Source: Bispira polyomma (taxonomy: Eukaryota). From it: DNA of 64,000 nucleotides. Under the pieces are notes generated by a model. It saw only the letters and a list, made by a program, of their open reading frames with translations. It ran no database searches and was not told the DNA's origin. Of the stretch, positions 9,825 to 60,800 are shown piece by piece; within the stretch, counting starts at the first letter, position 1; the number at the start of each line of letters is the position of its first letter. A program made the translations under genes and the position numbers. The stretch spans positions 28,644,001 through 28,708,000 of the forward strand of contig OZ287751.1 in NCBI GenBank assembly GCA_965649765.1, read 5' to 3'.

Positions 9825-9898
9825 ATGAACCTTCAGATGCTTACCTCTCTGGCCTTAGTGGCTATATTCTTGCTGGTGGAGAGCACTGAGGCTAAAAG
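9825..9898 (+). CDS. TEP coding exon 1 (signal peptide [24 protein letters not shown])
   Basis: Acceptor tatag at 9810, ATG at 9825, hydrophobic core followed by T-E-A; phase-2 donor ag|gtaggg matches the next exon. Confidence 0.85.
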
Positions 9899-18800: not shown

Positions 18801-21800
18801 CCTGAAGAGACCGAGTAACTGTACCCATTTTTTTTTTAAAAAAAAGGGTGCCAAAAGGATTTTAACCTAATAGTACTGTTGTACCAGTTACAATCTGTTT
18901 TACTTAAAAAATATATATGTGTCTTTTAAGTCAGTCCTTTTTTGGTTCTCTTTAATGATCTGAATAAGTGTAAAAAAAGACGTATGCACTTATACTTTTC
19001 AACCTTTTCGTCATATGTCCTATGTCTGGTGAGTTTAAGCTTTAGAGAATGGTTAATTTATTTTGACACGTTACAAATCCTTTAAGTTATTAAGTATTAT
19101 TATTATTATTTTCAGTACAACTGAGAGCAATGGCTGTGTATTCTGATCTTCTGCCTTACACCGGAAATCTGGACATTATCATCACGGTATATACTTTTTA
19201 TGAACAGTAGACTCTGTATAAATATGTATAAACGTGTCCAATATACACAGGATTTGGTTTTATTAGTATAGTTAACTTCTTCCTAATTTAAAACTAAAAT
19301 TTTGGAATGTTGGGACAAGAAAATTGGTTCCAGTTACCGTAAATTTTGTATGGTATTGCCAAGAGTTAAAAACTTGGGACCTTCTGATCACCAGACCAAC
19401 TCCCTAACTACTAGGCCACATGAAGATAAAGTTTCATAACATTTAGTCAGTGTACTTAACCGTTATATTAGATCAATATGTGATCAAACAGATGACCTAA
19501 AAATAAAATATTTTAGCAAAAGTCAGATTTTGGTTAATCTCTTAATGTTGATCCTTTTTTTTGTTCCTTATTTACAATTATTTAATTCTGGTTAAAATGT
19601 TGTCTTAGTGCCTTATTGTTTGTTATAACAAAAACAAGAGCTGAAAAATTTGAAAATAATAACCAAGATATGCTTCTGTTACCTTGACAAAGGATTACAG
19701 TAATATTTTTTGACAAAATTTTGTATCTTAATAACCAAGGCACTGGATAAATAGGAAGTACATATTCTAATGCTAAATCCTGATAAAACATACTATAGTA
19801 GGGTAGACGTAATGTCTTGGAATCATAAAGCAGCTGGTCTGATGAGCAGAAGGTCCCCTGGTCTATTCCTGGTACCGGCCACTAGTTTTATTGGTGAGAT
19901 AACATCATTGGGCAAGATGTGTACACACGTTTGCCTAGCGGCTTGGATTACCACTTAAAATGGCAGTCATCTGTCACTGGGTCCTATCCCCAGTGGCAGG
20001 ATAAAGATTCTTGGGAACGTTGATTATTGATCATCCTCAAGCCTCTCTCTTCAGTTAGGAAATGACAGTAGCTGAGGCAGTTGACTGTTGCAGTCAGTAA
20101 AGGGTTTGCAGTGTAAACTAAGGTGATATCAGGCTGATTAGGGTGATATCAGGCTCTATCTAAACCAACATTTACATGCACATATTGCTAGAGCTTTACA
20201 TTCATATTTGTATTCCTTAGGATCCCAACAAAAGCCGTATAAAGCAGTGGTTAGAAGTGAATGAGAGTTCGGGGGTGGTGAGCAGAGAACTCCAACTATC
20301 TGACCAGCCTGTCCTTGGTACATGGACCATTGAAGTCACCACAGCAACGGTATGAAGTCTCAAAACTCTACTTAATTAAATGGCCTACCTAACCTTTATA
20401 TTGATCCCTATATTTATTGATGTATTTCAAATCGTACTCTGGGTACATTTAAAAATACCAAAGTATCATAAACAACAAAAAACAAAAATATTTCAGTTTA
20501 AGATATATAAAACACTACAGCATTTAGCTTTAATTTATTCAAAGGTCTTCTTCTAGCATACAGGACTCTTATTTCAGCCCAATTAAATTTTGTATTATTT
20601 AAACCCCTTATATATTAGACTAAGTAAGTGCTGAATATTAACCACTTTAATTTTGTGGCCTAGTGAGTAACACTCGCTTAAAACGATTTCAGCTTAGGAT
20701 GACCAGATACTGTGAAGCAGATACAATGTGGCTCTGATAATCACTTAAAATGACGGTCATTCGGTCCTTTTTTTTTCTAGTGGAAGTCTAAAGATCCTTA
20801 GGGACGGACATTGATCGATCGTCATTAATTTTTAAAATAAAGTATACTGTTTTAATCGGGTATCCGGTTACCCAAATATTTGGATAGCAGTGTAATAAGT
20901 GACAAACTTAAAGGCCCTCAGGGACCTACTGGTATCAGTAGTTCTTTTACATATCTGTGATACAATTAACTTTCCAAATAAATCCTTTAAAAGTAAATAA
21001 TTATTTATTACAGAGAGAAAAGAAAAGCCTGCAATTTACAGTGCTTGAATATGGTCAGTATTTCTTTCTTTTTTATTTAATTTACTTCTTGGTTGTTTAC
21101 AAATTTTCATATTTTTTCCAATCTTCCGAATGAACATTAAACTTTATTAGACATCACATAACTACAATTTCTAGTGTTTACTGGGTTTTTTTTGTGAAAA
21201 ATTACATTACTGAAAGAACTATATCCACTGGGTATCAAGTACACTGCAGACAAAATTAGTCTATTTCCGTCTATGTGTATACAGTTATATTTACCGTAGC
21301 GTACAAAATTAGTACAAGTAGCATATATTTGTGTATTAAAAGTGAAATTGTCACTAATATAAGCCCATAGGGGCTGGAAACTCTGGTTTTGTTAATGTTC
21401 TTTGTTATCAATATATTGATGTTCTAGTGTGACAGAAATAAACGAATAAACTATATCACTTATCACTTCGACTTTCCCTCCACAAACCAAGAGTATATCT
21501 AATCTAATCTAACTTTTATAGCGCTTAATCTCTCCTTCTTAGGAGATTCTAAGGTGCAGGACAGCATCCTTATTCAATTTTCATTTCCGTTAGACAAGCA
21601 TGGGTCAGCACCATGGAGACGCCGGTTGAATTTAGGGCTATGGTGGAAAAACCTTGTCGAATAGGTAGGTTTTGAGTTTTTTTGAGGATTTGAGTGAGGT
21701 TGCACAACGAATTTCGGCAGGTAGTTCATTCCAAAGTGTTGGAGCATCATGGGCAAAGCTATTGTTAAACTGATGTTTAGATTTGTGTACTGCTGAGATA

Positions 21801-24800
21801 AATCTTGGAACAGTCAGGTAACCTTTTTCCAGTCTGCTCCTTCTGGTATTATGACTGCATGTGTAAAGTGTGAGGTATGGATTCCAGTATGCTGAAAGGT
21901 CATAATTTAAGAATTTGTAGACTAAGGTAGCTGTTTTGAACATACATCTAAACTCAATGGGTAACCGGTGGAGATTTCTTCAAACAGGAGTAACACGGGA
22001 GTACTTAGAATGGTTGGCCACCAGTCTGGCTAACGATTTTTGGATTTATTGCAACTTACGGATGTCAGCCTTGAATAAACTTCTATAAAGAGAATTACAG
22101 TAGTCAAGACGACTTGTAACCAGGGCATTTGCAACTATAGTAGCAGTACTGGCTGACAAATAGCGCCTAACCCTTCTTAGATCCCTCATTTGGATGAAGC
22201 AAAACTTGCAAACTTTATGAACTTGTTTGAAGAAGGAAAACATAGAATCAAACCACACCCCCAGGTTCTTGACAGCACTTGCAGGGTACACCATGTTTCC
22301 TAAAATATTGACTGGGAAAAAATCCTTCAATCTATCAGCCTGTGCTCTTGCTCCGAATAGTATAAACTCAGTCTTATCCGGGTTTAATTTAAGCTTGTTG
22401 GCAAACATCCATTTTTGAACATCACTGAGACAACTTTTTAGACTGTCGAGAGCAGTTGTGGCATTTTTATATGAGAGATGAGCATACAACTGTGTGTCAT
22501 CAGCATAAAAGTGGTACTTGATATTGCTATGTTTGCTGACGATATAGCTGAGCGGAGTAGTGTACAAAGAAAACAAGATTGGGCCCAGAAGTGACCCTTG
22601 TGGAACACTAAACTCAAGCCTCAACAACGCTGACAGAGTGGAGCCTATTTTGACAGACTGAAATCGATTTGAGAGATATGAAGTAAACCATTCGAGAACT
22701 GTACCATGAAAGCCGAACCAGGACGATAAGTATTTGATCAAGGTAGTATGATCGATAGTATCGAAACCTGCCGACAGGTCGAGGAGGACTAGTGCTGTAG
22801 GTTCACCTTTTGAAAGAGATATATGTACTTCATTTTTGATGGATAGATGGGCTGTTTCAGTGGAATGGCCCTGTTTATAAGCAGACTGCAGTAGATTTAT
22901 ATCTGTCTATAGTAATTACAATTATAAGTTTTTATAACCATACTGTATCCACTGTTTTTCAGTTCTTCCCAAATTTGACGTGAAGTTAAGCCTGCCAAGT
23001 TATATGTGGTCTGAGGACAAGAGTTTGACAGTAGGAGTGAAGGCCATGTAAGTGTAATTTGTAGTATTACCTCTGCAAAAGAGGTTATGTTTTTACCCCT
23101 GTCTATTTGTTTGTTTGTTAAAAGGATTTCACAAAAAAAGCACTAAAACAATTTTTAATAAACTGTGTAAGTTTTACTAAAGATCCGGATAAAGCTAAGT
23201 AATGTAATGGTCCAGATAGTCTGAGCTGCTTTAGTGTTTACATTGTTGATTTTTCTAGTATGCACTCTGTGTGCTGGATATTATATAATGTACTCATACT
23301 ATTACAGCAAGTACTGACAGAGTAATATTCTGTACTTTAATGAATAATTTCATATAGGTATATCTAAAACGGCAAAACCTACTGGAAATGGGTGTTTTGC
23401 TCAAATACATTGTTATTCAGGAGCATTTATTACTGGTTTTGTTGCATTTGAGTTAAAAATCAAGTTTAACTATTAAACCTAAAACTGTGCTTAAAAACTA
23501 TGATTGATACACTGTTTTCCTACTGGTGGCTGATTGCAAAAATCTTAGCAAACAAACTTATCTTTATTCCAAAGAAAAGAATCACTGATCGTGGAATAAT
23601 TTATATGCAGAGTCCCATAGCTAAAACGTGGAATCCAAATAACTTTTTTTTAAATCCTATTTTGAAATTGTTGCTTAGCCTTGCATATGTCAGTATACAC
23701 ATATTATATATATATACTTCCATTGCTAAGCATGCTTTACATTGTTTTTACTACAAAATTAAAAACATGGTACATATAATATACTCAGAAGCCTTTAAAT
23801 CATGATCTCTGAAGACGGACTAATCAGTGGCTGAAACCCAAGCGGTATGCATTGCCATTGAAGTGTCACAAAGAATGGTAGCAAAGAATGTAGTGGTAGT
23901 GTTATTACTACCATTAATTAAAGTAAATATTTAAAGTCGCATTCTTAAGGTAATTATTTTTACACTTCATTCAATAATGGTATTTTAGTTGAGTTTCACA
24001 ATAGATGAACACCTCGTGGCACTTAGTCATTATATAAACTTAACGGGTACTTGGACCTAAAGGCCGTCGCACACCATTATAAGTTTACATAATTGGTGTT
24101 TATCTATATGATGTATAACCAAGCCTTAAAGAGGTATTGTATTTCATAATATACAGGTATACATTTGGTCAACCAGTCAAAGGCCAGGCGGATGTCATGA
24201 TCAAGCTACAAACCTATAGTTCTTACCAGACAGAGATGTACGACTTGCCAACAATACATAGGACCATTGAAGTAAGAATTGAACACAGAGGAATTAAGCC
24301 TCTCATTTATTGGACAGTAGAACCCCTGTTATCTGAACATCTTGAAAGAGCCACATTTTGTTTGGATAATAGAAGATTTCTGTAAAAGTAAAAGAGGCAT
24401 GATTTCTGTATAAAACAACAGGCAAACCAAAATTTGAGAAAGTGAAAATAAGTTCATAGAATTGAATATTCGGATGATAAAAGTTCAGATAATAGAGTTT
24501 CTACTGTAGAAATAAAGTTCAAGGGCAAGGACTTTATTGGCGAAGAAAGGACTGATTTACGGCGGAATAATGGACAAGGGCTGGCAGGCCTGAGTCCATT
24601 ATGCCGGAAGACTGTCTGTTATTCGACAATAAAGTAGAAGCCTGTGTACTTTATTTCTATTGGAAAGACTGACAACAGTATATTTTAAAGCAAATAATAA
24701 GATATAAGATATTTTCCAAGTTACTGTGAACTATTTTTGTAGCTACTGACGGAACTATTTATCCGTGATCTGTTCTTCCAGATAAAGTACTGTTACGGAC

Positions 24801-33800: not shown

Positions 33801-36800
33801 ACTATTTTTATATGTCCAGACAAATTAAAAGGTTAACACTTTGCTCTAAAACTATAAAAACACTCATATAATGATTCTTGTATTGTGACGTCACACAATT
33901 TGAAAATCTATGTAGAACGTCATATCTGTAAACAAATCTCGCAGAGAGCCTTTTCTATTGTGACATAATACGAGTATTGATCCAGCATATATCAATACAA
34001 AATATATGCTACACAATTTTATAAAACATGTATATTATTTCTAGTGATTTACATTTTTCAATATGTTTCCTAATTTTATAAAAACAAAGAATATAAAACA
34101 TCTTTCTGTTTAGAAGAGTGTAAGTGTAATGTTTTTTCTAAAATAAGCTGGGTTTTTTTTCTTTTATTAAAAAACGAATTCATTCAAAATAATACTGATG
34201 TTTTCCTTTTTCTAGTCATGTATAATACTTCAGTATTGATCCCTTATTGATATATGAATTGTGTCACGATTGTGAAGTATGTACTTTAAAAATATTACCC
34301 ATTTTAGTTACAATTTTACACACTGCTACATGCATTGTATGTCTCAAGATACCTATTAAACTGATACGTAAAATATATGAATTAGTATACAATTAGAATA
34401 TATGTCATTCTTTATTATTTCTACTCATACAAATGTGAATATGTTATCCATAAATCGACTTTAAGGCCACCCCAAAAAAATTGTGCTGTTTCTGAGAAGC
34501 TCGACTTCTCATAACGTGGTTATTGGCGTTCATTTTATGCGTTTACGTTAATAAAGCCTTAAGGCTTTAGTGACGTAAACACAAAAAACGATCGCCGCTA
34601 AACCACGTTGTGAAGGAATCACTGTCTAGAAACATACACTACATTGTTATAAAGGCCTCAAAGTCAATTTTTAAATACGATTTTTGCTTTATGAGTTGTG
34701 ATAATGATAGAGGACAGATTAAAAACAATTCAAGTCGAATTTTATAAATTTTAACACTGATTTTAACAATTTATCAGCAACAAATACTATGTATAAGAAG
34801 GTGTAAAATTGTAACAAAAACATCAATATTTGTCCAAGTACACCCTCCACAAACGTGACACAATACACATACCAAGAAGGTATTAATACTGAAATATTGT
34901 ACATGACTAGAAAAAGGAAAACATTAGCAATATTTTGAATGAATTCGTTTTTTCATAAAAGTACAAAAACGGGGATAAATAGAAAAAACATTAAAGTTAC
35001 ACTCTTCTGAACAGAAAGATACTTTGTATTCTTCGTTTAAAAAACATAAGGAAACATATTTAAAAATGTAATTCATTCAAAACAATATACACGTTTTATA
35101 AAGTTGTGTAGTATATATAATATGTTTATATATGCTGGATTAATACTCGTATTGTGTCACAATAGAAGGGGCTCTCTGCGAGAATTGTCTACAAATATGA
35201 CGTTCTACCACAGATTTCAAATCGTGTGACGTCACAATACAAGAATCGTTATACGGCTTTTTTTATTAACTATGCAATAAAATAATGAAGTTTTAAATAG
35301 TATTTGAATATAAAAATATGTAAAACGATCATTAAATAACCATTTTATGACTGCTGTAGTAAGTATATGTGCTAAAGTTACAATTCGTAAATGCAATATG
35401 ATTTATCGGCAACGTGTTTGTGTGTTTACATTACTAAAGCCTTAAGAGATAACAGAAGTAGTGGCATGATGCCTGACATTTCCTTTATATTTTCAGAGAT
35501 CTTTGTATTTAGTAATACCCTGACCAGACTAAAAAAAATAATTAATTTCTCCGCATTAATATATTAAATTACAAAAAAGGATTACATTGTTTTACTAGAT
35601 AGAATACATATAAAAATGCTCACAGGTGGGATTATGACACTTACTAAGGTCTGGAGTACCTCCAATAATGAAACAATAGATGAAAAAAAAGTACATAAGT
35701 TAACAAGGGTTCGACCAATAATGGTCCGGGACTATTTCTATGTCCAGAAAAATGACCCCCTGTTTTTCTATTAAAAATCATCTTGTGATTTTGTGATTTT
35801 ATGGGTACACGTAAAGAAAAATGAATATTTAAAATGGCTCAAGGGTGAGATCACCACACATACCACCAATCAAATGTTTGCAGAGAACCACCAGATAATC
35901 CAAAAAGAGAAAATACTTTCTTAGTCAACAAAGGGTCAATGTGTATATCGGTCCTGCACTTGTTTCGTAAGCTGTGAGTCATAATTTTTAAACTAACACT
36001 CCCAAAAAATCATGTTATATATTGTATTGTGATTTTTTTTCTCTCACAATAATACATTTTCTTTGTTCTACAGTTCATAAGTAAAGGGAAAATTATCGAC
36101 CAAAGGACACACACTGAAAATGAAAATATGACAGAATTTGATATTGCTGTGGTGATGGACAAGCACCTTTGTCGTAAGCTCGCTCCCAGTCCTCGTATTT
36201 TTGTCTGGATGATCACCGAATCGGAGGAATTCATTGTGGACAGTTTAGACTTCTCTGTGGATGGGGCTTTTACCAATAAGGTATGAAGACAAAAGTAGAT
36301 TGTCGCTTGTTCTGTGAATGGGGCTTTTACTAATAAGATATGAAGACAAAAGTTAATAGTCCCTATTTGTTCTGTGAATGGGGCTTTTACTAATAAGGTA
36401 TGGAGACAAAAAAAACTATTCCCTTGTTGTAATATTGCGTATGTTGCTCTTGATTAATTATACTCACAATATTTCTATTTTCTATCAATAAAAATCACAA
36501 TTTTATTATTTAAATATGGGAAAACCGTGATCTTTGACTTTCAGAGCCCCTTACTTCACGTACACTGACTATACTTTTGTGACTGTTTTTGCCAGGTTTC
36601 TGTGGGGTACTCCAGTCCAGAGACGGAACCAGGCCATGACATGCGTGTTACAGTAGAAGCCAGTCCTCAGTCTTATGTGGGTCTGCTGGCTGTGGATCAG
36701 AGTGTCCTGTTACTGGGAGGAAGTAATGACATCACTCAGCAACAGGTGGGGCTTTAAGATCATTAGCAACATAACAAAATCTAATAATTGTAAGTGTCCC

Positions 36801-39800
36801 GTGCTTGTTTAAAGTAATATTTGTTCTCAGGGAAGTGTAGCAAAAATTTCTGTGATTTAGTACTCACTTTAATTCATCTTTAATTTTTAAGTTTTATTAA
36901 TGCTTACAAGTACATTTATTTGTTAGCTCAGGTATTATATTCTAGTAACAAGATGTAATGTAATATCTTGTAGTAATGTTTAATACCGAGATGCAATGTA
37001 ATATCTTGTAGTAATGTTATACCAATATAATATCAGTGTATATCAGCGCATTAAACACTCGGGCTGCCCGGGTCTCCCCTTTACCTCTACTGTTAAACAT
37101 GTGACTATTTAACTCAAGATTCGCAAGAACCACGGTTCGAATCCCAGCAGAAGCAAGTTTCTTTATCAACTGAAGGAACAAAACTGATAAAGTGGTCACT
37201 CTCTTGTTAAATAATATAAGTAAAACGTTGCTCGAATACTTTGTCACTTTTGGTGTCACATCTTAGTGCGCCAAACCTATATCAGGGAGAAGCTTGTTAG
37301 TGTGGGGTTGACACTTGCCTGCCACCTCTTTAGTTGTGAGTTCAAATCTTGGCCCCAGGCATGCATGTGGGAAATCTGGCAATAGACTTGCTGAAGGCTG
37401 GTAGTTTGTGGTGCAGTCATCTTGACCATCTAATCTGTACTAATCCTTACTAGTAAACTGCTCATCCTGATACAGTACAAATGTGTAGAAAGTAAGGTAA
37501 ACCCTAAGGTAAACAAACAGGTTGTTATGACTCTGTTAATGGTTACACCAGAACTTACTATGATTACTACTGGTGTCACTGTCCAGTATGTATGATATAT
37601 TGGTAGGTGTTATCAGACCTAGGTGGTATAATGACTCTGGTAATGGTTACAACAGACCATACTATGGTTACTACTGGTATCTGACTGTCCTGTATATATG
37701 ATATTGGCAGGTGTTGTCAGACCTAGGAGGCTATGACTCTGGTAATGGTTACAGCAGACCGTACTATGGTTACTACTACTGCTGGTGGCCAATTTACAGA
37801 GGAGGAAAAGACACTGCCGAAGTCATCAGAGTAAGTCACTGATATTTTATTTATTCAGGTATAATTTAACTTCTTTAAGTAGAACTATGTTAAGCCAATT
37901 TGTCTTTAATGTGGAGAAAAAGCTGAGAGCTTCAAATTTATTTTTTTAATAAGGTAAGTGGAAATGCCATTTCAGTAGAAGTATTTCTCTTGGTCTCTTG
38001 CCTCAGGTTTAATTTACAGAGCTTCAACTGTATTCATATTAGTGTACCCGACCATGACTGGTAATTCCCCAAATCCTTTTTTTCTGTAACTGAGTACCAG
38101 ATCATATAACATTATTTATCACCCACACATGTACTGTAGTCAGTAACAAGTGAAAACATTACTTCACAAACCATACTAAAGCACTGCATACATATATATC
38201 TTCATGTAGAAGTTACACATGAATATTAAAATGCGGTATGCTATACCTGTTATTTGTACTGCAAATAATAACACATTTAGCAATGTTATTTGGCACCCTA
38301 TTTAAGGAAGTAAACAGATGGTGTGCGCTGAATTACTGTAAGAGTTGGATACCTGCCCATTTAAAGCATTAAGTACCAATTACCGGGAAGTGACATTGAG
38401 AATCCTAGTTAATGTAGCACTACATTGATGATTATAATACATCCTCTTTTTGCTAAATGTTTTGTCTAAATTTGATTTGTCCTTCAGTTACCTATGCAAG
38501 TTAAATTGGTTATTGTTACTGTAAACTTGATATATATTTTTTTTATTATTGGCAAATGAAACATTCTACCATTTAATAAATATTGTTAGAAAAATAGACA
38601 GAACAATTTATGGGTAACTAAACCTTATAGTCTAGATATTATACCCACACTAAATACAATTTACTTTTTTTTCATCATAGTTCTCTATTAGTAAATTAAA
38701 GAATTATGTATTCAGTTCTGATTATCTGAGGTGCTATTGTAATAGTGCTAATATATGTAAGTACTATATATTTATTGTGTTACACTCCAGAATGCAGGTT
38801 TACAAGTGATGACTGACAGTTTGATCTATCAGTACAGATGTAAGTATTGTATAATGTTAGTAAACGTTTTCAATGCATATATTTCTTGCTATATATGCAT
38901 GTTACATAGTGCAACTTCAAAACCATGCTGAAACAGGCAAATGCAATAACTCAATAACTTAGATGGCCTTTTTGAACTGGTCTGGTTATTCATGTATATT
39001 TCCCAGTAGGAGAAGAACATATTAAAATCTGGTCCAGAAGTTGCTAGTGATGGCTGGGTGAAAGAAATATTTATTAACAAAAAGCAGACACTATGCAGCA
39101 CTGTTAGTACTGAGTTAAAAACATTAAAGTAAAGTTTTGTATGGATACCGATCAAATCAATGAGATTAAAGAGCAAAACTAATTTGGAGTGGACTTCTAA
39201 TTAAACAGGTCAAAATACATTTTGTATGACAAACTTAAACAAAGTAAGGTTTTGGAGAACATGACCTATTCTAGAGAGGTATGGTCTCTTTACAGTTCTA
39301 CAAGAGTTTGAATTTGAATTGGGATATTTACCGTCCACTCTAGTACCTTTAGTAGGTTATATTAGGACGGGTAGTTGGAAACGCTGGAGGAAACACTGCA
39401 TACAGTTGATCAAGATTTTGCACTGAAACCAGCTTTCCACATAGAACTACCACCTTTCCCACATAGGCAACTACGGGAGTTGAACTCACGCTGCCCAGAG
39501 GTGAGAGACCAGTGAAGCACAATGCTTGCTAACCACTAGGCCACCGTGGCCCCTAGTTCTACAAGAGACTATTACAACATGAAAGTGTGGTAACCACAGC
39601 ACAAAGGTGTCACTCTGGTTGATATACCTCCATCAAAGTATATCAGTGGAAATATTACATCATGTCACTGAAAATATGTGTTGTAATGCCACTTTTGACA
39701 GATGAACATACATGTATCTTTACTTCAAACCATCATAGTAGCTGTTGGGTTATGGTAATATCCCCATGTCAGGGTGACTGTTTGGGTGGCTAGGTATAGG

Positions 39801-42800
39801 TGTTTCTTCCTGGTCGGGACAAGGTAGTTTATATTGGTACAAATATTCATTCAGTGTACAGTTGAACAACAATATTGTCTGAATTGTGAGTTTGCCCTTT
39901 GACATTAAAAAAAAAGACCTTGACCTAAAAATCCTTTGTCTGGCCTAGATTTTGACAACTTCATGTCACAGGAAGCATGCAATACTTTATTACAAATATT
40001 TGTTTAAGGGTGTAGATGTGCAACATTTGACCTTGGAATTATGAAATGAACTTAAACAAAACATTTTCAGACTGCTATATGTCAGTAATAACAACTTACC
40101 AGACACAAAAAGTTTACATTTGGTTTAAACATCTACGCGGAGTACAATTGTGCAACATTCTTGTGCGACTTTATTTGACGTAGTGATGACCTGAACTTTA
40201 AAATCTTTAAATGCCATTATATCTCATTGACAATTTGTCACAGGGTGTTGGGTTGTGGCTTTTCTAGTTTGTTTATGTTAACAACAGTATAAAGTTGAAA
40301 GTGTTATCGTAACTAAATACAGTAGAATTTCCATTGTATGCACTTCTATTTTTCGAATTTTGATTTTCTGACTTCCACATATATTGACAAGTAATCTTGC
40401 AAAGGAAAAAGCACAGTGTGCTGAAGAGAAAACCAATTTCTTTCTTTTGAATTGTTTTCAGTGGAATGTTTACACCATTAAAAATAATCATCTCTTTACA
40501 TCTCCTCGAACACTAATGACACTTGAGTTCACAGAGTTCAAAGTTAAACAAAAGATACGCTTGTCGACTATAATATCATCAAACCGACAAATGTATGATT
40601 CTTTGATTGTAAATTGCCACTGTCCCTTTGTGGTCAGATAATAGAGGTTCTACTGCACATGTATCTGTCTTATCACATAGTTTTTGTTTCACTTTGTATT
40701 GGGTGTAGGTACTATGCCTTGTATTCAGTAGACTGTATGTTAGGACGACTATTATCCAAACTTCTGCTGTCCTAATATTCAATTTTGATGAATTCAATCT
40801 CACTCTTCTAAAATAAGGATTTAATATTGTATGATACTGAAATACCTCTTCTATTCTAAAAACCTTTTCATTATTCAGACAAATGCTCACTCTCCCAAGT
40901 TGTTCGGATAAAAGCATTGTGTACTGAAAATCTATATATATAAATAAAAATAAAGCACATTTAATGTGCAGAACCACTTATAGATCAAAATCTATATAAA
41001 ACTCGACATATTTAAAATACAGCATGTATTTGAATGAGATCTATTTATCTATTTATTTACATTAGATTGCTACAATTGTGGACGAGTTGGCCCCCTTGGT
41101 GAAAGGGGACAAGCTGGTGCTCCTGGTCTAATCCGTGGACAAGCTGGTTCCCGTGGTGAGCCTGGTGGTGCCCCTGGTGCTCCTCCAAGAACTGATAATG
41201 TAGATTTACCACCAGAATCACCTATTCGTGAAACAGATGACATACTGAAAGAGCCACAACGGATCAGAACAGAGTTCCCCGAGACTTGGTTGTGGCATGA
41301 TCTTGTTGCAGGGTGAGTCTCAGATATTACATCCAAGGTTTTAACATTACCTGAATGTACACAGGTTGTCCTAAGAGCATACCTTATTCATCTAAATAAA
41401 TGCACCCCTTCCTCCTCTTCCAGCTCTGACTTCTTAATTTGTTACAAATATCTTATATTTGGACAAAACTGTCGACCATTTCAGACCGATTTTGAGTGTT
41501 CAAATTTCAGCATGTAACATTTTGTAATTTGAACTTTACAAAATGACAAATTTTTTAGTAAAAACGATGTTTATAGGCAGAGAGAGAAGATTGCCATGAA
41601 AAAACATGACACGGCTGTGTCAGCAATTGTGAATGACAGAAAACTTCTGTAAAAATCACCATATATACCATATACACATGTGCGATTTTTTGTCAGTAGA
41701 TGCCTGGTGGAAAATTATATAGTTCCTCCAGTAACATATAATATTCCTATGAATACAGTAGAATTCATTTACCGCAATTATTTTATATATTCTATTAGAA
41801 TCGGAATAACACATTCCAAACCTACGATATACAGTAACTTTTACCACTCTTGGAGGGTAGGAACACTCGGGCTTCACCTTCGGGTTACTACACATCCAAT
41901 GATGGTAAATATTACCGTATACCATGGTTTGTTATGTGTTATTTCTTAATTGATTAAGCTCATTTATTAGCGCGAGTATTTAAGTAAGGTAAATGATGTT
42001 GTTAGAAACACCATTTATTTTGATGAAATGTTACCAATTTTAGGGGTTCACATTTTAGCGTGAGATGGTTTTAGTATCAGATGAATAAACACATTTCAGT
42101 ATAAGCTTTCCAAATTGCCAATTTTTAGCGGAAACGATGTATAGAGATATTTAGAGAGAGTGGTCACAGTAAATACAACCTTAAAGCTTTAATTACCACT
42201 CAACTACACCTCCAATCCTTGGTGTCAAATAGTTGCTCCCCCGTCACTTGCAAAAAGCATCACCCTGGGCATTTATTTGGATAAATACCCAAGTTCAAAC
42301 GGAATCTACTATGAAAACACCTTGTTCTATTATAGATCAAGGAGTTTTCAAAAGAAAATATCATACGTTGTAGTTGTATTACATTTCTTAATTCTAGAGC
42401 AGTTGATAAATAAAGGTGGTGTGGGAATCATTTACAATTTCCTCGAAAAATAATATATTTGTGGCTTATATTATTCATATTACACATACAGTTGAACCCC
42501 TTTAAGTCAAATCTCAAGGAACCAGAAAAAAACTTTTACTTAAGCAGGATTTCCACTTGTCAATTTTAAAGGAAAATGCCTCTGTGGGACTAGAAATTCT
42601 GCTCCACAAAAAGGATAATTGAGTTAACAAAGTTCTACTTAAAGGGGTTCAACTGTATAGTAGTATCACTGATAGACCCGATAGTAAGGGGTGACACAAC
42701 AGTTGTATTAATTACAATATAGTATCAATGATGTAAATATATCTGTTACCTGTTTAATATATGTGTCTATATATATACAAACCTAGCCGTAAGTCATTTA

Positions 42801-45800
42801 CTTGGACTCAAGTCCCTGACACTATCACCTCTTGAGTAACAAGTGTCATTGTGTGTACTTGCATGCAGCTGTAATTACATTATAGTATGCATGTTCTAAA
42901 CACATCTACTGTCACCTGCATACGTTATATGACACAATGACAGATCTTATTGCAAGGCATCTACACAGACTTAAGTCCTTGTTCTGAAAATAACTGTAAT
43001 TATATTAGAGTATTCATGTTGTAACCATACCTATTGTCTGTGGTATATATGTATATTACTACAAACCTGATGGTACAGTTTCCTTCCTGTCTCATATCCC
43101 TGATAGGTCCATCAACTCCTGGGTAGTTAGTGATAATGTTTGGTTTTACTGTCTACAGCTCTGTAACATTATAGTATTATATCTATCTGTTTATAGGCCT
43201 GATGGAAAGGTCTCTCTCCAGACTAAAGTCGCTGATACAATCATTTCCTGAGTGGCTACTGTTATTGTTTGGTTTTACTGTATAAAGTTCTGTAACGGTC
43301 TTACAAATTATACCATAGTATTATGTATACATGTATCTATTTATAGACCTGATGGAAAGGTCTCCCTGCAGGCTAAAGTCCCTAATACCATCACCTCCTA
43401 CTGTGGTTACTGTTATTGTTTGGTTTTACTGTATAAAGCTCTGCAATGGGGATACAAATTATACCATAGTATTATGTATACATGTATCTATTTATAGACC
43501 TGATGGAAAGGTCTCTCTCCAGTCTAAAGTCCCTGATACCATCACCTCCTACTGTGGTTACTGTTATTGTTTGGTTTTACTGTATAAAGTTCTGTAACGG
43601 TAATACAAATGATAAGATTGTATTATATATACATATATCTATTTATAGACCTGATGGAAAGGTCTCTCTGCAGACTAAAGTCCCTGATACAATCACCTCC
43701 TGGGTGGCTAGTGCTTTTGTTTGGTTTTACTGTATAAAGTTCTGTAACGGTCATACAAATGATACTTTAGCATTATATATACATGTATCTATTTATAGAC
43801 CTGATGGAAAAGTCTCCCTGCAGGCTAAAGTCCCTGATACCATCACCTCCTGGGTGGCTAGTGCTTTTGCTCTACATCACCAAGATGGACTGGGTATAGC
43901 GCCTAACACTGCCAAGGTATGGCCTTTGAAACAACTACATGTATATAGAGATTTTTTATCTGATGTAAGATCAGTAAACCTCTACTGTCCAAACTTGTTT
44001 GGAAAGCAAGACTTAAATAATAAGAAGAGTCAGTCATCAAATAGAAGAGCTATTTTAAAATTAGTACAAGACAAAGTATATTGCAATTTCAGATGAAAGG
44101 GGTTCAAAAGATCCAATATGGAATAATAGAAGGTTAAACCAGTAACTGAAACAAGTAATTCTGGTACTTAAACATGTGCATATTCTAAAATCAATCACTA
44201 CTTTCAGCTGACTGTCTCTTGTAATAAGACACCAGGGTTCACTGTATCCCTACTGTCAGCTGAGTGTCTCTTGTAATATAACAACAGTTTTTTACTGTAT
44301 CCCTACTGTCAGCTGAGTGTCTCTTGTAATATAACAACAGTTTTTCACTGTATCCCTACTGTCAGCTGATTGTCTCTTGTAATAAGACAACAGGGTTCAC
44401 TGTATCCCTACTTTTAGCTGATTGTCTCTTGTAATATAACAACAGGGTTTCATTGTATCCCTACTAATGGCTGACTTTCTCTTGTAATATAACAACAGTG
44501 TTTCACTGTGTCCCTACTTTCAGCTGACTGTCTCCAAGCCTTGGTTTGTTTCCCTGGATCTTCCCTACTCAATGATTCGAGGTGAAGAAGTTGCCCTGAA
44601 AGTCAATGTATTCAATTACCTGACAGAAGATATCCGTGTATGTATTATAAATGCATACAGTTAAGTACAGTATTCAATTACCTGACAGACGATGTCAATG
44701 TATGTATTATTATTTTTTTAATTCATATGGTTTCTACTTCACCCTAGTCATCCTTTACCTTACCCACAGGTTGCTGGTTCGACTCCCACTAATTCTGTTC
44801 ATACCAACTGGAATTACTGGCAATACTGTTACTTCAACTTAAGCAGGATTGGAGATAAAAGGATATGCCAACATCTAATGTTTTTCCGGGGTTTTTTTCC
44901 AATGCTTTTTAGTCACACACTCAGGTAGTATCTAAAGGATGTTATTTTTTTATTTGCTCCCCCCTAACACTCTACATAAACCTAATTCTTGCTCTTTCAG
45001 GGTGTTGTTACACTGAAAGCTTCCACCGAGTTCAATGTGCGTCACCCTAGCTTTGGTGGAAAACCAATGGGAGGTGAAGAAGTCATGAAGGAGATCTTTG
45101 TAAGTACAGGAAGGAATAGAACATCTGCCCATATCTAAAATTGACTACCTGTAGCATTATATAAAATAGTTCACAGAATTTGTATATCTATGTAAACTTA
45201 GATCCATTGCTTTATCTTTCTCCATTCTATTTTTGTTTAGAAAGTTGAACCCTGGTCACAAATGTCACATATATGATGGATTTCTTACTGTCCTTATTCT
45301 TTTAAACTAGGTCTTCTAGGTTGAAAGAAGTTAAACTAGAAGAATGGTCTTTATGCTCATCAAAAGTACACACTGTCATTGGTCAAGAAGATTTAACATT
45401 GTTGAACCTATTCTAATGTTGTGACAAATTAGTGACTTTGTTTTAGTGTTATGTGTTAAATTGGATAATGTTCATTGTTTTTCTCATGCATATTTTTACA
45501 CATATTACTTTTTCAATAAACAAGATGTTTTGTTTTGTATGTATAGTTATTAGAGCAACTATCATCAATGTGTACTTTTCAATTGAAAATTTATATCAAA
45601 GAGTAATGAGTTTATCAAACGCTCATAGATATAAAATATAATAACTTTTTGAAGTGTGAATATGCTGGCACCATCAGACACTCAAATGGGTTAAAATTGT
45701 CTAATTTACTGTACCATCTGTCTCATATACAGGTTGAATCAAGGCATTTTATTGTTGCCTCAGAATCAAAATATATCATTATTATCTTATTACAGGTGAA

Positions 45801-48800: not shown

Positions 48801-51800
48801 TCCGATAAATGTTAAATGGAACATTTGTGGAACTCTACATTAATTTAACAAAAAGCTACAAGATTTTACCTCCCCAGATTTAGAGGTTATAGTTGAAATA
48901 ATACTGCTTAGATGCATAGTACAGTATCTAAAGTGATATTTTATTGTTTCAACCTAACAGCCAGAGGGCGAGGAACAAGAACATGGTGTACCAGTCCTAA
49001 TCAGTCTGCATGACGGTGACCAGTCACAACAAGAAGTGATATCCATAGAGTATCCTAGTGAGGTGGTAGACGGTTCTCAGAGGGCTCTGTTCACAGCCTA
49101 TGGTTGGTTTGTTTATATAATCATTGACTAAATATGGGTGATGTTCTAGTGTCCCAAGGTTCAACAAGAAGTGGTATCCATAGAGTATCCAAGTGAGGGG
49201 GTGGTAGACAGAATTCAAAGCTAGTGCTCTCTTTACAGTCTTTGGTTTGTTTATTACAAGAAGTTGTATCCCTACAGTATCATAGTGAGGGGTGGTAGGT
49301 AAATTTGGTTAAGTTAATATCCCCTTGTATTTTGAGGACAATCGGCAGTCTCGCTAAGGTAGTTTCTTTTAAAATCTACCCTGTAATAGGTGAAAATCCT
49401 CCTTCAGTAAAAGTATTTCTGTTCATCCCTTGAGGCTTGACTTTAAAGGGGCGTTAACTGTATCACAAGGGTAACTGTATGGATTTATCTTTCCATATGA
49501 AGAGCATTCACAAAATTCTCTTTTGGCCATGTGCTCTTTTTAACCCACAGACCATTGGCACTTGTTGGTGTATAGTGTCATCTATTGTGTGAGCCTGCCT
49601 ATTGGATGAGTGACTCAATTGTCTGAACTATATCTCAGGAACTGCTTGTTACAGGAAGTAAATATTTGATACAACTATTCCTTGGGATGGAGAGCCATGG
49701 ATTAACAGTTTGCAACCTAATTGTAATGACTTTTAATCATTTTGACTTTTGCCCTTGAAGTTATGACCTTAAAACTATTCCCTGGAATATATGTCAGGGA
49801 TTAAATATTAAAAGAGTTTCATTTTTAGTACAAATATGCCTTGATACTGTGAATGCTATTTTTAGAATGCAATGCTAAATAGCCTATAATTATGGTTTTA
49901 TCGCTGTATTCTGGAGCATATACAGTTGTGTGCATATCAAGTGTCTGAAAAACTAGAACTACCATAAGTTATAAGTTCAGACTTGTATTCAGAAAATATA
50001 AATGGTTCAACTATTGGATATGTGTGTAAACCATGAATCGGTTCAAAGACTTGGTTTCTTCACAACAAGCAATATCATGCAAAGTACAGCACAGCTTAAT
50101 GACATTTGATTCAGTGAATGGCATGAACAAGAGGGCTCATACAGCTATTGGTCCATCTCAGCTTGAGTTTCCGCCGATTTTATCAAATTGATTTAAAAAC
50201 CGAAAGGAATATTATCAAGAACGAAGATGATTTGTGACAATATTTTACAGTTTGGACGGATCTCAAAATCAATATATCAGTGCCATAAGTAGGACATCGT
50301 CACAAATATTACACATTGTAAAGATAATAACTCCTCAAATTGGACCCTTGACATATAAAAGAAACATACTTCACTGAATATAATCAGATAAGAACATTTT
50401 TTGTTTTTTAATTCAAAAGCATGGAGACAGATGATAGGTGATATGAATTTGTGTCTGAGATTTTCTTTCTAAGTGTAACTATGCCATTTTCAGGTGACCT
50501 TATGGGTCCTTCGCTGGGTGGTCTGGACAAGTTACTAAGGATGCCTTACGGCTGTGGTGAACAAAACATGATCAATTTTGCCCCCAGTATCTACATTTTG
50601 TCTTACCTGAAGCAGACAGGTACCGTGACACCTGAGATAGAAGCCAAGGCTATCAGAGTCATGGAATCAGGTAATACAAACTCTGTTGTATATTACTGTG
50701 GTTTTTTAAGTATCAGTCCCTCCAGACAGTCCTTGTGGGGTTGGGGTTTAGTTACTGATAAAATAGATCTTTATTAATGTGCCCTAAATATGCAACATCA
50801 ATGGGATAATTAACAGGATAATCAATAGTATAGTCCTGCAACACAGTATTATAGTCACTCAAAAGGTATAAATTAAATGGTTAAATATTAAAATTGAAAA
50901 CAGCAATTGATAGCTTTAATATATATTTGTACCTAAGTCTGTAGTGACAAGCATAAAGATAACCAAGACATTAGTGCAGTTTCTAATACAATCTGCAACT
51001 CCAACCATTAAGTCTAATTTCTCTTTAACTACATGTACAACCAATTTCTTGCTCCCAGTATTCAAACATACTAGTTTTAAAATAGGTGAAATTAGGAGAT
51101 AGCCATAAGAATTAAGAACTAAACCCTGTGTATGTTGGACATTCCACTTTTACTCTATTTTTATCCTAATTTTTTTGATGCCTAGGTAGGGGCCGTGGTT
51201 GCCTAGTGGTTAGCAAGCATTGCGCTTCGCAATCACTGGTCTCACTTCTGGACATCGACAAGCGTGGGTGCGCCTTCCGTCGATGTCTATGTGAGAAAGG
51301 TGGTAGTTCCTTACTGTGGGCCGCTGGTTTCAGTGCAGAACCTTGGCCAACTGTATGCAGTGTTTCCTCCAGCGTTTGCAACTACCCGTCCCAGTATAAC
51401 CTAAACAGATTCTAGAGCAGACGTTAAATATCCCAAGTCCAAAAAAAAAAAAAATTTGATGCCTAGGTTATCAGCAAAGCAGACGACATTTGTTACTCCC
51501 AGACAGTGCCTATGTCTGTCAGCAAGCAATAACCACCCCCAAAAAATTATTTTAGTTTTCATTAGTTCCTCGAAATAGGAAATTGTTAGTACAGCAGACT
51601 CCTTTTTAAAAAAATTATACGTGTTGAATAAAACATTAGCCAGTGGTGTGTGTTATAGTGACTCCAGCTATCTGTAACCTATTACCAAAACATTTCCTTC
51701 AGTTCCCGGTGATAGTTTTCTCTGTGGTCGAAAGGATTAAAAAGATCTATTTGTGAGTTATTTTTACTTTAGGGTATCAAAGAGAGCTTTCATACCACAG

Positions 51801-54800
51801 GAAAGATGGAGCATTCAGTGCATTTGGTGAAAGTGATGCCAGTGGCAGTACTTGGTCAGTAATCCATGCAATAATATATATAACCTTAATCTTACAGTGC
51901 TATCTTCAAGCTGAAATTTTAACTGCAGAAACATTCACTTTTTTAGTATTGCTAAGACTGTTATTGAATTGGGTCATTTGTATTATTTTAAAACTCCCCT
52001 TTCTTATGTTTCTTAATAAAATGCATGTATTTTACAGTTGGGAGCTCTCCTGACAAATTAATAATGGCAGTAAGCAAGAGTGTTCTGTGGAATTCCTCTT
52101 CACGTCATTAGAGGCAGTATAATTAGACTGTTATAAAATTATCATGATCAAACAAATAAAACAAATACTTACATATGAGTATGTACAGTCTCCTGAGTTT
52201 TGCCAACCCTTCACCACCTCCCTATTCTAAAATAAAACTCAATGTTAGCATCAAAGGAAACAGCTTTGATGGATATAATGCACAATCGAGTTACACTGAG
52301 TCTACTCTACTGTATTGTAGCTTATTAGGCATAGTTAGGTATACTTTGTATCACAAAAAATTTGTAGTTCATTGTGAATTCATTTGTCATGCTTATGCTG
52401 AAAAGTAAATCAAATTTCACGTTTCATATTTTAAGTGCGATGACTTAAATATGTAAATATGTGTATGTATATTCACTTCTTTGATAACAAAACCACAATA
52501 ATGCTATCAGTCATTTGAAGAATATTCACCTATAGTAGCTCTGATATTAACAAGTGACCTTGACCTAGAATTTACCAGTTGTGTCAGCTGACACTGATAG
52601 TGACTCTCATCAAATGCTTCTTCTTCTGTCTATTGCACAGGCTTACCGCCTTCGTCATACGGTGTTTCCACCAAGCCAAGCCTTACATCACTATCGACCA
52701 GACCATCATCGACCAAGCTGTGAGGTTTATCATACGATACACTGGGGAAAGTAGAGAGTTTACGGTAATTATGCAGATATACACCTCTAAAGTAAAGATC
52801 ATTATACTGATGTTGAGATAAACTTGTAAAGTAAAGATTATTGTAAAACTCTATTATAGAAACTCGATCTCTTTTGGAAATCTTTATGGTTAAAAGATAC
52901 GTCCTTTTCTACAGAAATTGCAGATTATTTAAAAAAATGCCATGTCTTCTTTCTGGCCCTTTTGTATTTAGAAACCAAAGCTTTAGTACCTGATCGAAAC
53001 CTGCTATATATATGCAGTAGAACCTCTGTTATACAACCTTCTATTGTCTAAATATTCGATTTTATGAACTAAGTTTCACTCTCCCACATCTATGTTTCCC
53101 TACTTCTTTGTGCATAAATGCCACTTCTTTTTTATGAACCTTTTATTTGTCCGAACAAAAAAGTTATTGCTTTTCCAACATGTTTGAATAATAGAGTTTC
53201 TACTACGTATCAGAATTTCTACTGTTACAATGTCAATATAAAATAGCTATTGTTATTAATATTATACATTCTTATACTTTAGTGGAGAATCTTAATTGAG
53301 TTCAGTGGGACGTAACATGTATTAATATTATTATTTTCTAAGTTAAATATGGTTAATGGTGAGTGTGGTACCTGTGTTTCCGTAAAGACGTTTCTCCGAT
53401 TTATTGAAGCTGAGTGCTCCACCCTCTACATGTATCTTTGTGATGTTTGTATGTTTACAGGAACCAGGCCGGGTGTCCAATTCTAGGTTACAAGGTGGAA
53501 GTTCTAAGGGTGTTAGTTTGACTGCTTACATCACAGCCAGTTTGCTGGAGAATAAAGAGGACCTTTCTTCAGTAAGAACATTAATTGTCTAGATTTTTAT
53601 GTTGCACTTTAATACTGCACTGAAATAATTTTAGGAGTCAACCCCTTATGTTGATAAGTTTATTTTCCATTAATGATCCAAAAAAATATGTAATCCTTCA
53701 AAGATTTTTTAAGGTCCACCCTCTTACTTGAGAATCCTGCTCAGGTACATATAAATTTATTTCTCAGGTTTGACGTAAAGGGATTAAACTGTGTTTAAAG
53801 GTGTAAAAACCATGGACATGGACCTCTTTTGTGTTAATATTAACCCTTTGTTGTTAGCCAGCAGCCAACAGCATTTCTCACTCCCAGAACCAGTCCCAGA
53901 AACTTTGTTTATTTCCCATTGGTTCCTGACAATGGAAAATTGTTGGTGCAGCAGAATCCCCCATTTAAAAAAATTAAAACGCGAGGTCGTTATTGAATGC
54001 TGGAAGTATTCTGTGGTGTGTGTTTCAGCAAGTCCAACTAGCTGTAACCTATTAAGGAAAAAGTTCCTTCAGGTGCCACTGATAGTTTTCGCTTATTAGG
54101 TTTGAAAGGGTTAACAACATGAAAGTCAAGTAAAAGCATTATACACATCTGACTCATTATCAAACTATAACTCTACATCTAACTTTCTTACCCCACAATC
54201 ATTAATGCCTTGAGGGAATATTGTTGTACAAATGTTGAGTATGCAGGCGGGTGGGTAGTCTGGCGGTTGTCTTCCTTAACTGGACTAGATCTCAAAAGAA
54301 CTTTTAACTGGAGTTCATATTTGATCAAAAATAGTCATTCAGGAGTACAGTTGTGTAATATCTCTTGATCTGACCTTAATTTGACCTTTGACTTTGAAAT
54401 TATGAGCCTGTCCTTTGAAATCTTGTCTGAACTAGATCACAGGAACTACATGTCACAGGAAGTACATATTTAGTTTACATATCCAAAAATAAATGTAGAT
54501 GTGGAACATCATTGTCTGAAGTTATTTTGTCCTTAGACCTTTGACTTTTACCTTCGAATTTTGTGTGGGTAATATATCTCAGTAATTGCTTCATACATCT
54601 CAAAGAAGGTTTAGAGGTGCTACAAATATTCTCTGGGAAGCATTGTTGTGCAATATCAATCCTCATTTTGAGCTGAAAAACATTTTTTGGGGCTACAGTT
54701 GAGTAACTTTTATTAGCCGAAATAACTGGGTTATTTAAAATATTCTCTGGGGAGCATTGTTGTGCAATATCATGGTTTGTCCTCATTTTGACCTGAAAAA

Positions 54801-57800: not shown

Positions 57801-60800
57801 TTAGGCAGAGAGACTTATTGGAAGAAGGAAGAGGAAGAGAGAGAGATTGAGCCATACTATTGGTGGAGGTATCGCCCAGCCAACGCCTACAATGTAGAGA
57901 TGACATCGTACAGCCTCCTCACTTATACAGAGATGGGCAAGGTAGTAGAAGGTTCTAAAATCGTGTTCTGGCTGGCGAAACAAAGGAACAGCTTAGGGGG
58001 ATTCAGATCTACACAGGTGAGCCAATGCTACATTTCGTTGTTCTACTAACAGTATCTATCTTAAGGTGCTATGATGTGTAAGATTATTACAATTTAATAA
58101 ATGCAGTTGAGCCCCTTGTCCCTGGTAACAACCCTTTTTCTGTCCACCACAATATGACTACTGAACAATGACTTTAGTTGTTGCGCTGTATGGAGAATAA
58201 AAGCATTTACGGATTAGATTAGTCGAATCTCAAGGGACCAGGAGAAGTACATCTACTTAAGCAGGATTCTCACTTAACAGTGAGGCGATACTGTGATAAT
58301 GGCGATAGTGTGATTATGATAAAGCACTGAAGGATTTGTATTATTTGAAGTTGTATAATCCAAATATTGATCAGTTTATTAAACTTTTTTTGCACATAAT
58401 ATTTTGAACTTTATAACGATGGATGGCCTAGTGGTTAGATGCATTTACTGGAGACCTGACGGAGGTGTAGTGATAAGACACTTGCCTCAAACTCCTGCTG
58501 TCATGGGCATGCTGCATATGATATACATTTGGCAGTAGACTTGCTGATGGATGATAGTTTTGAAAAGAAAAAAGGGACGTTTCCCTGAAATAAACAAATA
58601 GATGCACTTACTTTTGCACAATCCCCCAAACTCAAACTGTGACACTATTATACTACAAGTAAATCATCACATCTATTATTGTCATACTGAAAGATTCTGA
58701 CTCTTCAGATGATAGAGGTTTGTAACCTTTCTGTGTGTATATGTTTTTTAGAGTTGAACTAGAATATCTGCATTCTATTTTATATCTTCCAAAGTTTTAG
58801 TAAGCCACCGTTGGTATGGTACTGGAGATACTATTTATTGCCTGATATGTATGTAAATCACAAGGTATATAACCTAATACTTTGTTATATAGGACACAAT
58901 AATTCCTCTACAAGTCAGTTTAAGTAGAATAATATAGGTATGGGCACAGCATAGATCTTCAATACTTTGTTATATAGGACACAATAATTGCTCTACAGGT
59001 CAGTTTTAGTGGGCTAATAAAGGTATGGGCACTGCCATAGATCTTTTTACAGTTCCAAATTAATGACAGCACTGCGCATGTCTGCTATTAATTCTGGGAA
59101 AAAGTCCCCCCCCCCATAAACAATCAGATGTCAAAGTTTGAAGACACCTGTGAGCTGTTCTTACAATAATTAACTATTAAATATTTAGGTACTAAAAGAC
59201 ACACGTTTAGATTAATTACAATACAAATTGACCATTGTATGCGGAATAAGGGGATTAGCTTTACCCATAATGCATAGCATGTTCCCACTGACTCCTTAAC
59301 CATAAGAAGGTCTATATGAGGATCGGCGTTTCCCGTTTGTTTTAAATGTGAAAAACGGCAATTTTTATTGGTAAAAAATTGAAGTATTCTAAAAAATAAT
59401 CCAGTTGAATATAAACAGATTGTGTGTTAAAAATTAATCAACAGCAATATAAACTGCTTAGCATTTTTTTAAATGCCTATATTTTTGTGAGGTACAACTA
59501 CTTTTAGTTTGGTACTGTGGGCTTTCTTACGTCCTCGATATCCCATGCATTGACCATACATACAGTCTAATTAGATATAACTCACAAGGTGTATATGTCA
59601 CTTTATTATACAGGACACAGTGATTGCTCTCCAGGCCATGTCAGATTTCCAGTCTGCACTAGGAGTGACCGAAGAACAAGAGATCAACATCCACTTGCAA
59701 GTAGATGACGTGGAGCACACCTTCCAGACCATTAACTCAGACAACGCACTTCTACTCCAGTCTTACGAGGTAGGATCTTGCCGGACTGCTAAGGCTATAG
59801 CAAAGATTTGAATTATATCAATTTAGTGGCACCCCCTTAAAGAGGTTTATATCAACCAATTTGAAACCTAAATTATTGTACAATGTATTTCTTTTTTGCT
59901 TAAAAGTCAAATAGTGGGACATGTATTTCTTTATTTGTGGTCACTTCCATGGCCTAGTGGTTCGACTCCTGGTGAAACAATAATGGTCAATGCTGGTTAC
60001 ACTCTTGACCAACATTTGTACACGCCATTGCTGATGATGACTATTTAACTATGTATTAGGATTACAAATGTTATTATTATGAATTTTCAACGCGCTTTGT
60101 TGATGCTAGGCATCTATTAAAGCGCAACAGTAGAATCAGTGATCCAATCGTAAAATCCATGGGCATAGCAGAGTTGTAAGGAAAGAGGTGGGAGCGTGCA
60201 CAAGGTAAGCTAAGGTGGGTAGGCAAGGTTAAACAGATGGGTTTTAAGCTTTTTTATAAAACAGATGAGTGTATCAACTGATCTGAGGTCAACTGGGAGA
60301 CTGTTCCATAACAAAGGAGCTGCAAAGGAGAACGCTCTGGATCCCGCCTTCCTGATGGGTCTGACCGAAGAAACAGAGAGTCTGTTGCCTCTCTTGCGGT
60401 CACTAAAAGAGAAAAGGGAAGCCAGGTAGGAGGGCCATCGAGTGACTACAGCCTTAAAAGTGGTGGTGTGTATTTTGAACGAAATAAGAGAGTGAATAGG
60501 TAGCCAGTGTAATTTTTTGAGGTAAGGATTGACATCTAATAATGATTTTTTGATTTTGATGGTGTTCTTTAAAGATGTCTGACATCAGGATGGCATGTTA
60601 AAATATACAATAGAATAATAAAACTGTTATACCTCTTTCTTCAGGTTCCCTCAGCCATTCATAATGTCACCATAGAAGCCACTGGTAAAGGGATTGCCTT
60701 ATTGCAGGCGAGTTTTTTCTGGTATTTACATTCTACAAACAAAATCAACAGAAATATTTTTCCTTTATTTGTTTGAAAAAGAAACAAGTGCTACTTGTGA

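Follow-up and report, generated by a model that had tools for sequence, protein, structure and literature searches.

The window, by which we mean the whole analysed stretch of 64,000 nucleotides from Bispira polyomma, contains no N and carries a gene for a thioester protein (TEP) whose first coding exon, at 9825, encodes a likely signal peptide and which extends past the end of the window (Table 1). The gene was searched as separate exons, with homologs mapped by tblastn exon by exon, and the splice phases form an unbroken chain from 22963 to the stop, given one probable GC donor near 60707. Exon-wise Pfam searches returned PF07703, PF00207, PF07678 and PF07677 in that order, and the marks of the alpha-2-macroglobulin (A2M)/TEP superfamily were found, namely the domain order, the CGEQ motif and a variable bait ending in an Arg...Phe plug motif. 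In the summed exon-wise tblastn scores CD109-like proteins ranked highest compared with A2M or C3, and the best PDB match of the thioester exon was human CD109, by a small margin. These results agree with the CD109-like identity proposed in an earlier note on this DNA. The thioester motif (GCGEQ at 50550) is intact, and as far as can be read from the sequence the gene encodes a CD109-like thioester protein and is apparently intact.

Table 1. Features of the B. polyomma thioester protein gene and related collagen-like baits
Feature	Position	Strand	Content or basis
First coding exon, signal-peptide-like	9825-9898	+	read from sequence
MG1-MG5 exons, minus two small unplaced exons near the 5' end	12921-36280	+	homolog tblastn, phases
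Bait-region domain exon (PF07703)	36596-36745	+	Pfam, E 2e-9
Linker exon ahead of the bait	37711-37830	+	sequence, homolog mapping, phases
AGLQVMTD exon, N-terminal bait boundary	38791-38839	+	sequence, phases
Single bait exon, 247 nt	41066-41312	+	CxxC, Gly-X-Y run, acidic/Pro-rich spacer, RxxFPETWLW plug motif
Cys-x-x-Cys, directly upstream of the repeat	41068-41079	+	read from exon translation
11 Gly-X-Y triplets (6+3+2)	41080-41184	+	three diverged 27-30 nt unit copies and a partial fourth
Conserved C-terminal bait motif, Arg...FPETWLW	41266-41295	+	role of segment from PMC9156758, PMC9352918
A2M domain (PF00207), two exons	43799-43916, 44524-44637	+	Pfam
Thioester exon, GCGEQ at 50550	50494-50670	+	sequence, Pfam; best solved relative human CD109
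Exon carrying Asn in place of the catalytic His	53461-53571	+	homolog alignment
MG8/receptor-binding domain exons (PF07677)	61916-62716	+	Pfam, tblastn, phases
EGF exon and hydrophobic GPI-signal-like tail, past the window end	L006:97-2441		sequence, Pfam
Cyprinid Gly-X-Y A2M baits			P0297 Carassius auratus; P0003/P0271 Labeo rohita; P0294 Puntigrus tetrazona

Downstream of MG8 the gene continues with an EGF-domain exon (L006:1548-1658; Pfam E 3e-10), for which the nearest homolog, P0031, gave no Pfam match, and ends in a tail (L006:2332-2441) that is hydrophobic, preceded by small residues and followed by the stop, and that reads like a GPI signal. Inspection of exons 60645-61227 found no polybasic run that could form a furin site before MG8. 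The column of the catalytic His, which usually but not universally lies about 100-110 residues past the thioester, holds Asn in this protein, as it does in 7 of 123 homologs (His in 96), a combination that would amount to A2M-like chemistry on a CD109-like scaffold. Tandem copies of acceptor and exon start were seen upstream of several exons (37520-37710, 43050-43830 and 44200-44523). The introns contain part of a LINE-type reading frame resembling reverse transcriptase on the minus strand (21638-22741) and, ahead of the bait exon, a short interspersed repeat of very high copy number as judged by read depth (39307-39553).

Canonical acceptor and donor sites flank the bait exon, and its splice phases match those of the AGLQVMTD exon and of the first A2M-domain exon on its two sides, which confirms the placement of the bait between AGLQVMTD and FPETWLW. 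A six-frame profile scan detected no other bait exon in the gene. The encoded bait is about 77 residues long, a length within the range of the homologs, and contains nine Arg/Lys residues. Its translation bears out the 11 triplets with two one-residue interruptions that had been described, the runs of six, three and two triplets being split by one inserted Arg and one inserted Gly; the reported 30-nt-spaced duplication was likewise located, as 12-nt copies at 41107 and 41137. When both strands were scanned, no second Gly-X-Y run of at least 5 triplets was found in the window. In three DNA runs, made on two samples of one study and possibly on the source material, single contigs span 39528-41822 with zero differences, thereby ruling out an assembly slip as the source of the repeat; these runs are DNA-like, free of splice joints, and attest to its presence only. 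No RNA run containing the region was found.

The Gly period of the bait is not explained by amino acid composition, with p about 1e-4 or lower. When the 69-residue part of the bait was shuffled, none of 200,000 shuffles matched the observed count of triplets or of Gly(i,i+3) pairs, and the longest run had a p value of 3.7e-4. Shuffling the Gly-rich stretch of 36 residues alone gave p = 7-8e-5 for the triplet and Gly(i,i+3) counts, and for the longest run p = 0.007.

With regard to the origin of the repeat, the 27-nt units at 41080, 41107 and 41137 share 17-18 of 27 nucleotides pairwise in a register of 27-30 nt, indicating that the run grew by local tandem duplication. Neither the repeat DNA nor its protein matched elsewhere in the genome in searches that give a lower bound; together with the internal duplication structure, this led us to reject the capture of a collagen exon and to prefer a local origin. 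Across the three units, positions 1-2 of the Gly codons vary in none of six columns and those of the X/Y codons in 8 of 12 (Fisher p 0.013, a contrast that is partly circular since the register had been chosen on Gly). This divergence of X and Y with the Gly codons kept hints at selection on Gly.

To see how common such a bait is, we compared it with the baits of CD109-like homologs, mostly of invertebrates, in a sample of 114 distinct sequences centred on P0031. None of the 114 has a Gly-X-Y run longer than 3 (poly-Gly not counted), and the other Gly-rich invertebrate baits consist of poly-Gly rather than Gly at every third residue. P0031 itself, the nearest full-length relative with about 50% identity by exon, lacks any Gly-X-Y run and retains the His. 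The Cys-x-x-Cys at the bait start recurs in 11 of the 114 baits (abalone, mussel and a sponge-labelled record), all of them free of a Gly-X-Y run. No collagen-like bait exon was found among the B. polyomma paralogs examined, including one on the same chromosome with at least 12 tandem bait-exon copies (one shortened). A representative search yielded no close ortholog (best match 67-69% on the thioester exon), nor did a search with P0031, and the bait exon as query gave one match. In a metagenome scan none of the five loci found was collagen-like, and the Atlas returned no usable match. We found no description of Gly-X-Y baits in macroglobulins or TEPs in the literature covered, a scope outside which most subscription papers fall, including older work on carp A2M. 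The bait is a genuine feature, beyond chance and rare, of an otherwise ordinary CD109-like gene.

The paralog with tandem bait exons lies at L021, L020 and L003 (G000:C4:42.46-42.49 Mb) and resembles BgTEP2-type mutually exclusive splicing. Every copy ends in FPETWLW; some copies have upstream stops and may be decayed, and two more (L002) lie in a neighbouring gene. Five near-identical TEP copies are located on C7 (G000:C7:63.98-66.56 Mb), four of them spaced by about 380 kb, and a close copy at C2:5.36 Mb; this set (L028-L031, L034, L035) represents either recent segmental duplication or assembly redundancy. The C7/C2 paralogs also show, at their bait exon, the tandem acceptor and exon-start copies noted above. 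The mitochondrial contig is read with the invertebrate genetic code, has its genes distributed over the two strands and contains an atp6-nad5-nad4L-nad4 block, a pattern consistent with an annelid.

Collagen-like baits were, however, encountered elsewhere in the family. Among 116 distinct fish A2M baits, collected around a Labeo protein in a way that favours Gly-X-Y baits, four cyprinid sequences (Table 1) contain non-poly-Gly runs of 8-9 triplets, or 9-12 when all Gly-X-Y triplets are counted. These runs of 8-12 triplets are unbroken, and they differ in length and in their X/Y residues with the register held. They scored 14.7-23.8 bits against Pfam Collagen, and the Labeo run is present in genomic DNA (L010:7788-7890). 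Loach relatives (P0327) have GPGGY-type repeats in the bait, a Gly periodicity that is not that of collagen. The cyprinid A2M clade is a stronger case of a collagen-like bait than that of the worm, and it shows that an extended Gly-X-Y bait is not unique to the worm within the family. Both baits have a Gly-X-Y run at the bait position and match Pfam Collagen weakly, but the cyprinid proteins, which are database models, belong to the vertebrate A2M branch and have longer, unbroken and Pro-richer runs, and no sequence evidence points to a shared origin. A bait exon of CD109 type in the genomic DNA of another animal (P0389, L014) encodes a shorter Gly-X-Y run, is 49% identical to the B. polyomma exon over 63 residues and has identical exon phases; this likeness may reflect either shared ancestry or convergence. 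Taken together, the cyprinid and P0389 baits mean that the B. polyomma bait is not unique, and the fish parallels raise the chance that the Gly-X-Y pattern is selected. A wider reading, which we hold only tentatively and rate below even chance, is that traps of the alpha-macroglobulin family have repeatedly and independently evolved gelatin-mimic baits against microbial collagenases (in an annelid, in the CD109-type exon of at least one further invertebrate and in a cyprinid A2M clade), and that these would form an undescribed class of natural inhibitors, displayed here on the cell surface.

As for the proteases that such a bait might attract, clostridial collagenases favour substrates that have Gly in both P3 and P1' and Pro in P2/P2' (PMC3985423). 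By sequence match the bait contains two strict sites of this clostridial pattern and seven with both Gly only, so the predicted fit to bacterial-collagenase preference holds at the level of sequence. Two strict sites are also reached in two abalone baits and in many fish baits. The substrate consensus of matrix metalloproteinases (MMPs) has Pro at P3 and a hydrophobic residue at P1'. The only Pro-x-x/hydrophobic match in the repeat is P-G-L/I (the slash marks the cut), in which P1 is atypical, and GPLG is followed by Glu rather than by a hydrophobic P1'; the MMP-site suggestion of the earlier note is only partly right. A short natural collagen-like MMP site, PEGL, is present in the human A2M bait (PMC8267569), so the principle of a collagen-like bait is already known in miniature. 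Since the nine Arg/Lys would allow trypsin-like enzymes to cut as well, the bait cannot be collagenase-specific.

Against this background, we consider that there is about an even chance that the bait is an unfolded, gelatin-like segment that biases, rather than restricts, the trap towards collagenolytic proteases. Human CD109 is a monomeric, GPI-anchored trap that becomes conjugated to the protease once its bait is cleaved (PMC12927315), and in this family the bait sequence sets the range of inhibited proteases (PMC8267569). The gene product would be a monomeric CD109-like protease trap of the secreted pathway, probably GPI-anchored, with one fixed bait. This bait would be an unfolded loop and would imitate, in its N-terminal half, the Gly-X-Y pattern of single-stranded collagen (gelatin). 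Enzymes with a preference for the bond between Y and Gly, such as bacterial M9-type collagenases and gelatinases, would cleave it efficiently, and trypsin-like enzymes could do so at its arginines. Any cut would break the chain, let the C-terminal plug leave its channel and expose the thioester. Given that a His near the thioester widens reactivity to hydroxyls (PMC9156758), the Asn at this position suggests a preference for amines; the thioester would then react chiefly with amines on lysines of the attacking protease and fix it to the cell surface, where the GPI-like tail and the lack of an evident furin site before MG8 would keep it. We infer the GPI anchor, the monomeric state, the amine preference and the bias towards collagenolytic enzymes, be they microbial or the animal's own. 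The Gly period beyond chance, the absence of runs longer than 3 from the 114 homolog baits, the recurrence in three fish genera and the fit to clostridial collagenase preferences argue for the gelatin-like bait, while the run-free P0031, the nine Arg/Lys that leave the bait open to many proteases, the poorly matched MMP consensus and the small number of strict sites (two) argue against it.

Baits are unstructured, fast-evolving and often rich in Gly/Pro, so an expansion with a 9-nt period is possible in the absence of selection for mimicry. The run could on this account be a generic flexible spacer, a by-product of the 27-30 nt tandem duplication, with the arginines or the flanking residues as the working sites. 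The tandem origin is clear in the DNA from the unit identity of 17-18/27 nt, A2M still folds when given a Gly-Ser bait and can be made inhibitory by single basic residues (PMC8267569), and Gly-rich baits are common, some fish baits having the GPGGY-type periodicity and the nearest relative having no Gly-X-Y run at all. We regard this explanation as the main rival, less likely than the gelatin-like bait, as all Gly codons were kept when the X/Y codons diverged, the other Gly-rich invertebrate baits are poly-Gly, and three fish genera repeat the pattern with its register retained.

The strand might alternatively serve as a binding decoy that draws to the trap modules which bind collagen or gelatin, whether they belong to microbial adhesins, to collagenases or to gelatinases of the host, the activating cut being made elsewhere in the bait. 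The weakly matched catalytic consensus sites are in line with such a role, and surface anchoring through the GPI-like tail would suit it. Many collagen-binding domains, however, require a triple helix, which is unlikely for this run, and we judge the decoy improbable.

The triple helix itself deserves consideration because the triplets are typical of collagen, a Cys pair lies directly upstream of the repeat and the fish runs are longer and without breaks. Collectin-type N-termini also have a Cys pair just upstream of the collagen run. A true short helix, nucleated by a disulfide knot of the Cys-x-x-Cys, could trimerise the protein or shield the bait until a helix-unwinding collagenase arrives. 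The bait, however, scored 15.5-17.3 bits against Pfam Collagen (PF01391; cut-off 27.2), and it is poor in imino acids, with no more than six triplets in an uninterrupted row. Moreover, both bait ends are fixed in one subunit, in which the C-terminal one passes through a channel (PMC9352918, PMC9156758), CD109 is monomeric (PMC12927315), and the Cys-x-x-Cys occurs in 11 homolog baits that have no Gly-X-Y run. A single-sequence, single-chain model of the bait showed no fold (pTM 0.12), which is weak evidence as a trimer is beyond such modelling. In keeping with the earlier note, the run is probably too short and too broken for a stable triple helix, and the helix reading seems to us still less probable than the decoy. 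An integrin-type GxOGER motif in GPLGER was dropped, its third position not being Pro and a helix being required for integrin recognition.

That splicing removes the repeat from the mature protein through an internal acceptor is hardly credible: in-frame AGs exist at 41204, 41216 and 41237, but the pyrimidine tract of the acceptor at 41066 surpasses those of the other in-frame candidates (11 vs 4-8), the stronger internal acceptor at 41190 is out of frame, a bait of about 77 residues fits the homolog range, and the open frame and the retention of Gly speak for coding.

Returning to the gelatin-like bait, its interest lies in the fact that the natural targets of invertebrate CD109-like proteins and TEPs are mostly unknown, their baits usually being too variable to read, so a bait that copies collagen predicts the target class specifically and at little cost. 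If this reading is true, selection wrote a substrate mimic into the bait more than once, which would point to host inhibitors of bacterial collagenases and offer natural templates for collagenase-selective A2M-type inhibitors, which have so far been engineered only. Fish plasma is easy to obtain, and the cyprinid baits provide an easier test system than that of the worm.

Compared with known systems, the B. polyomma protein resembles human CD109 (PMC12927315) in the order of its domains, in where the bait lies, in the thioester and in a hydrophobic tail at the C-terminus, whereas the Gly-X-Y bait, the Asn at the His position and the EGF domain before the tail are its own; unlike in human CD109, no polybasic furin site was seen leading into MG8, and surface release after cleavage would not be expected. 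BgTEP2, BgCD109, CfTEP and Drosophila TEP2 (PMC7016707) belong to the same subfamily and also carry the bait on one exon that ends in FPETWLW, but their bait exons are variable whereas the B. polyomma exon is single and collagen-like. With human A2M and the engineered MMP-selective A2M baits (PMC8267569) it has in common that the bait sequence picks the trapped protease. Human A2M, in contrast, is a soluble tetramer whose bait offers one short site in a diverse loop of 39 residues, with no extended Gly-X-Y.
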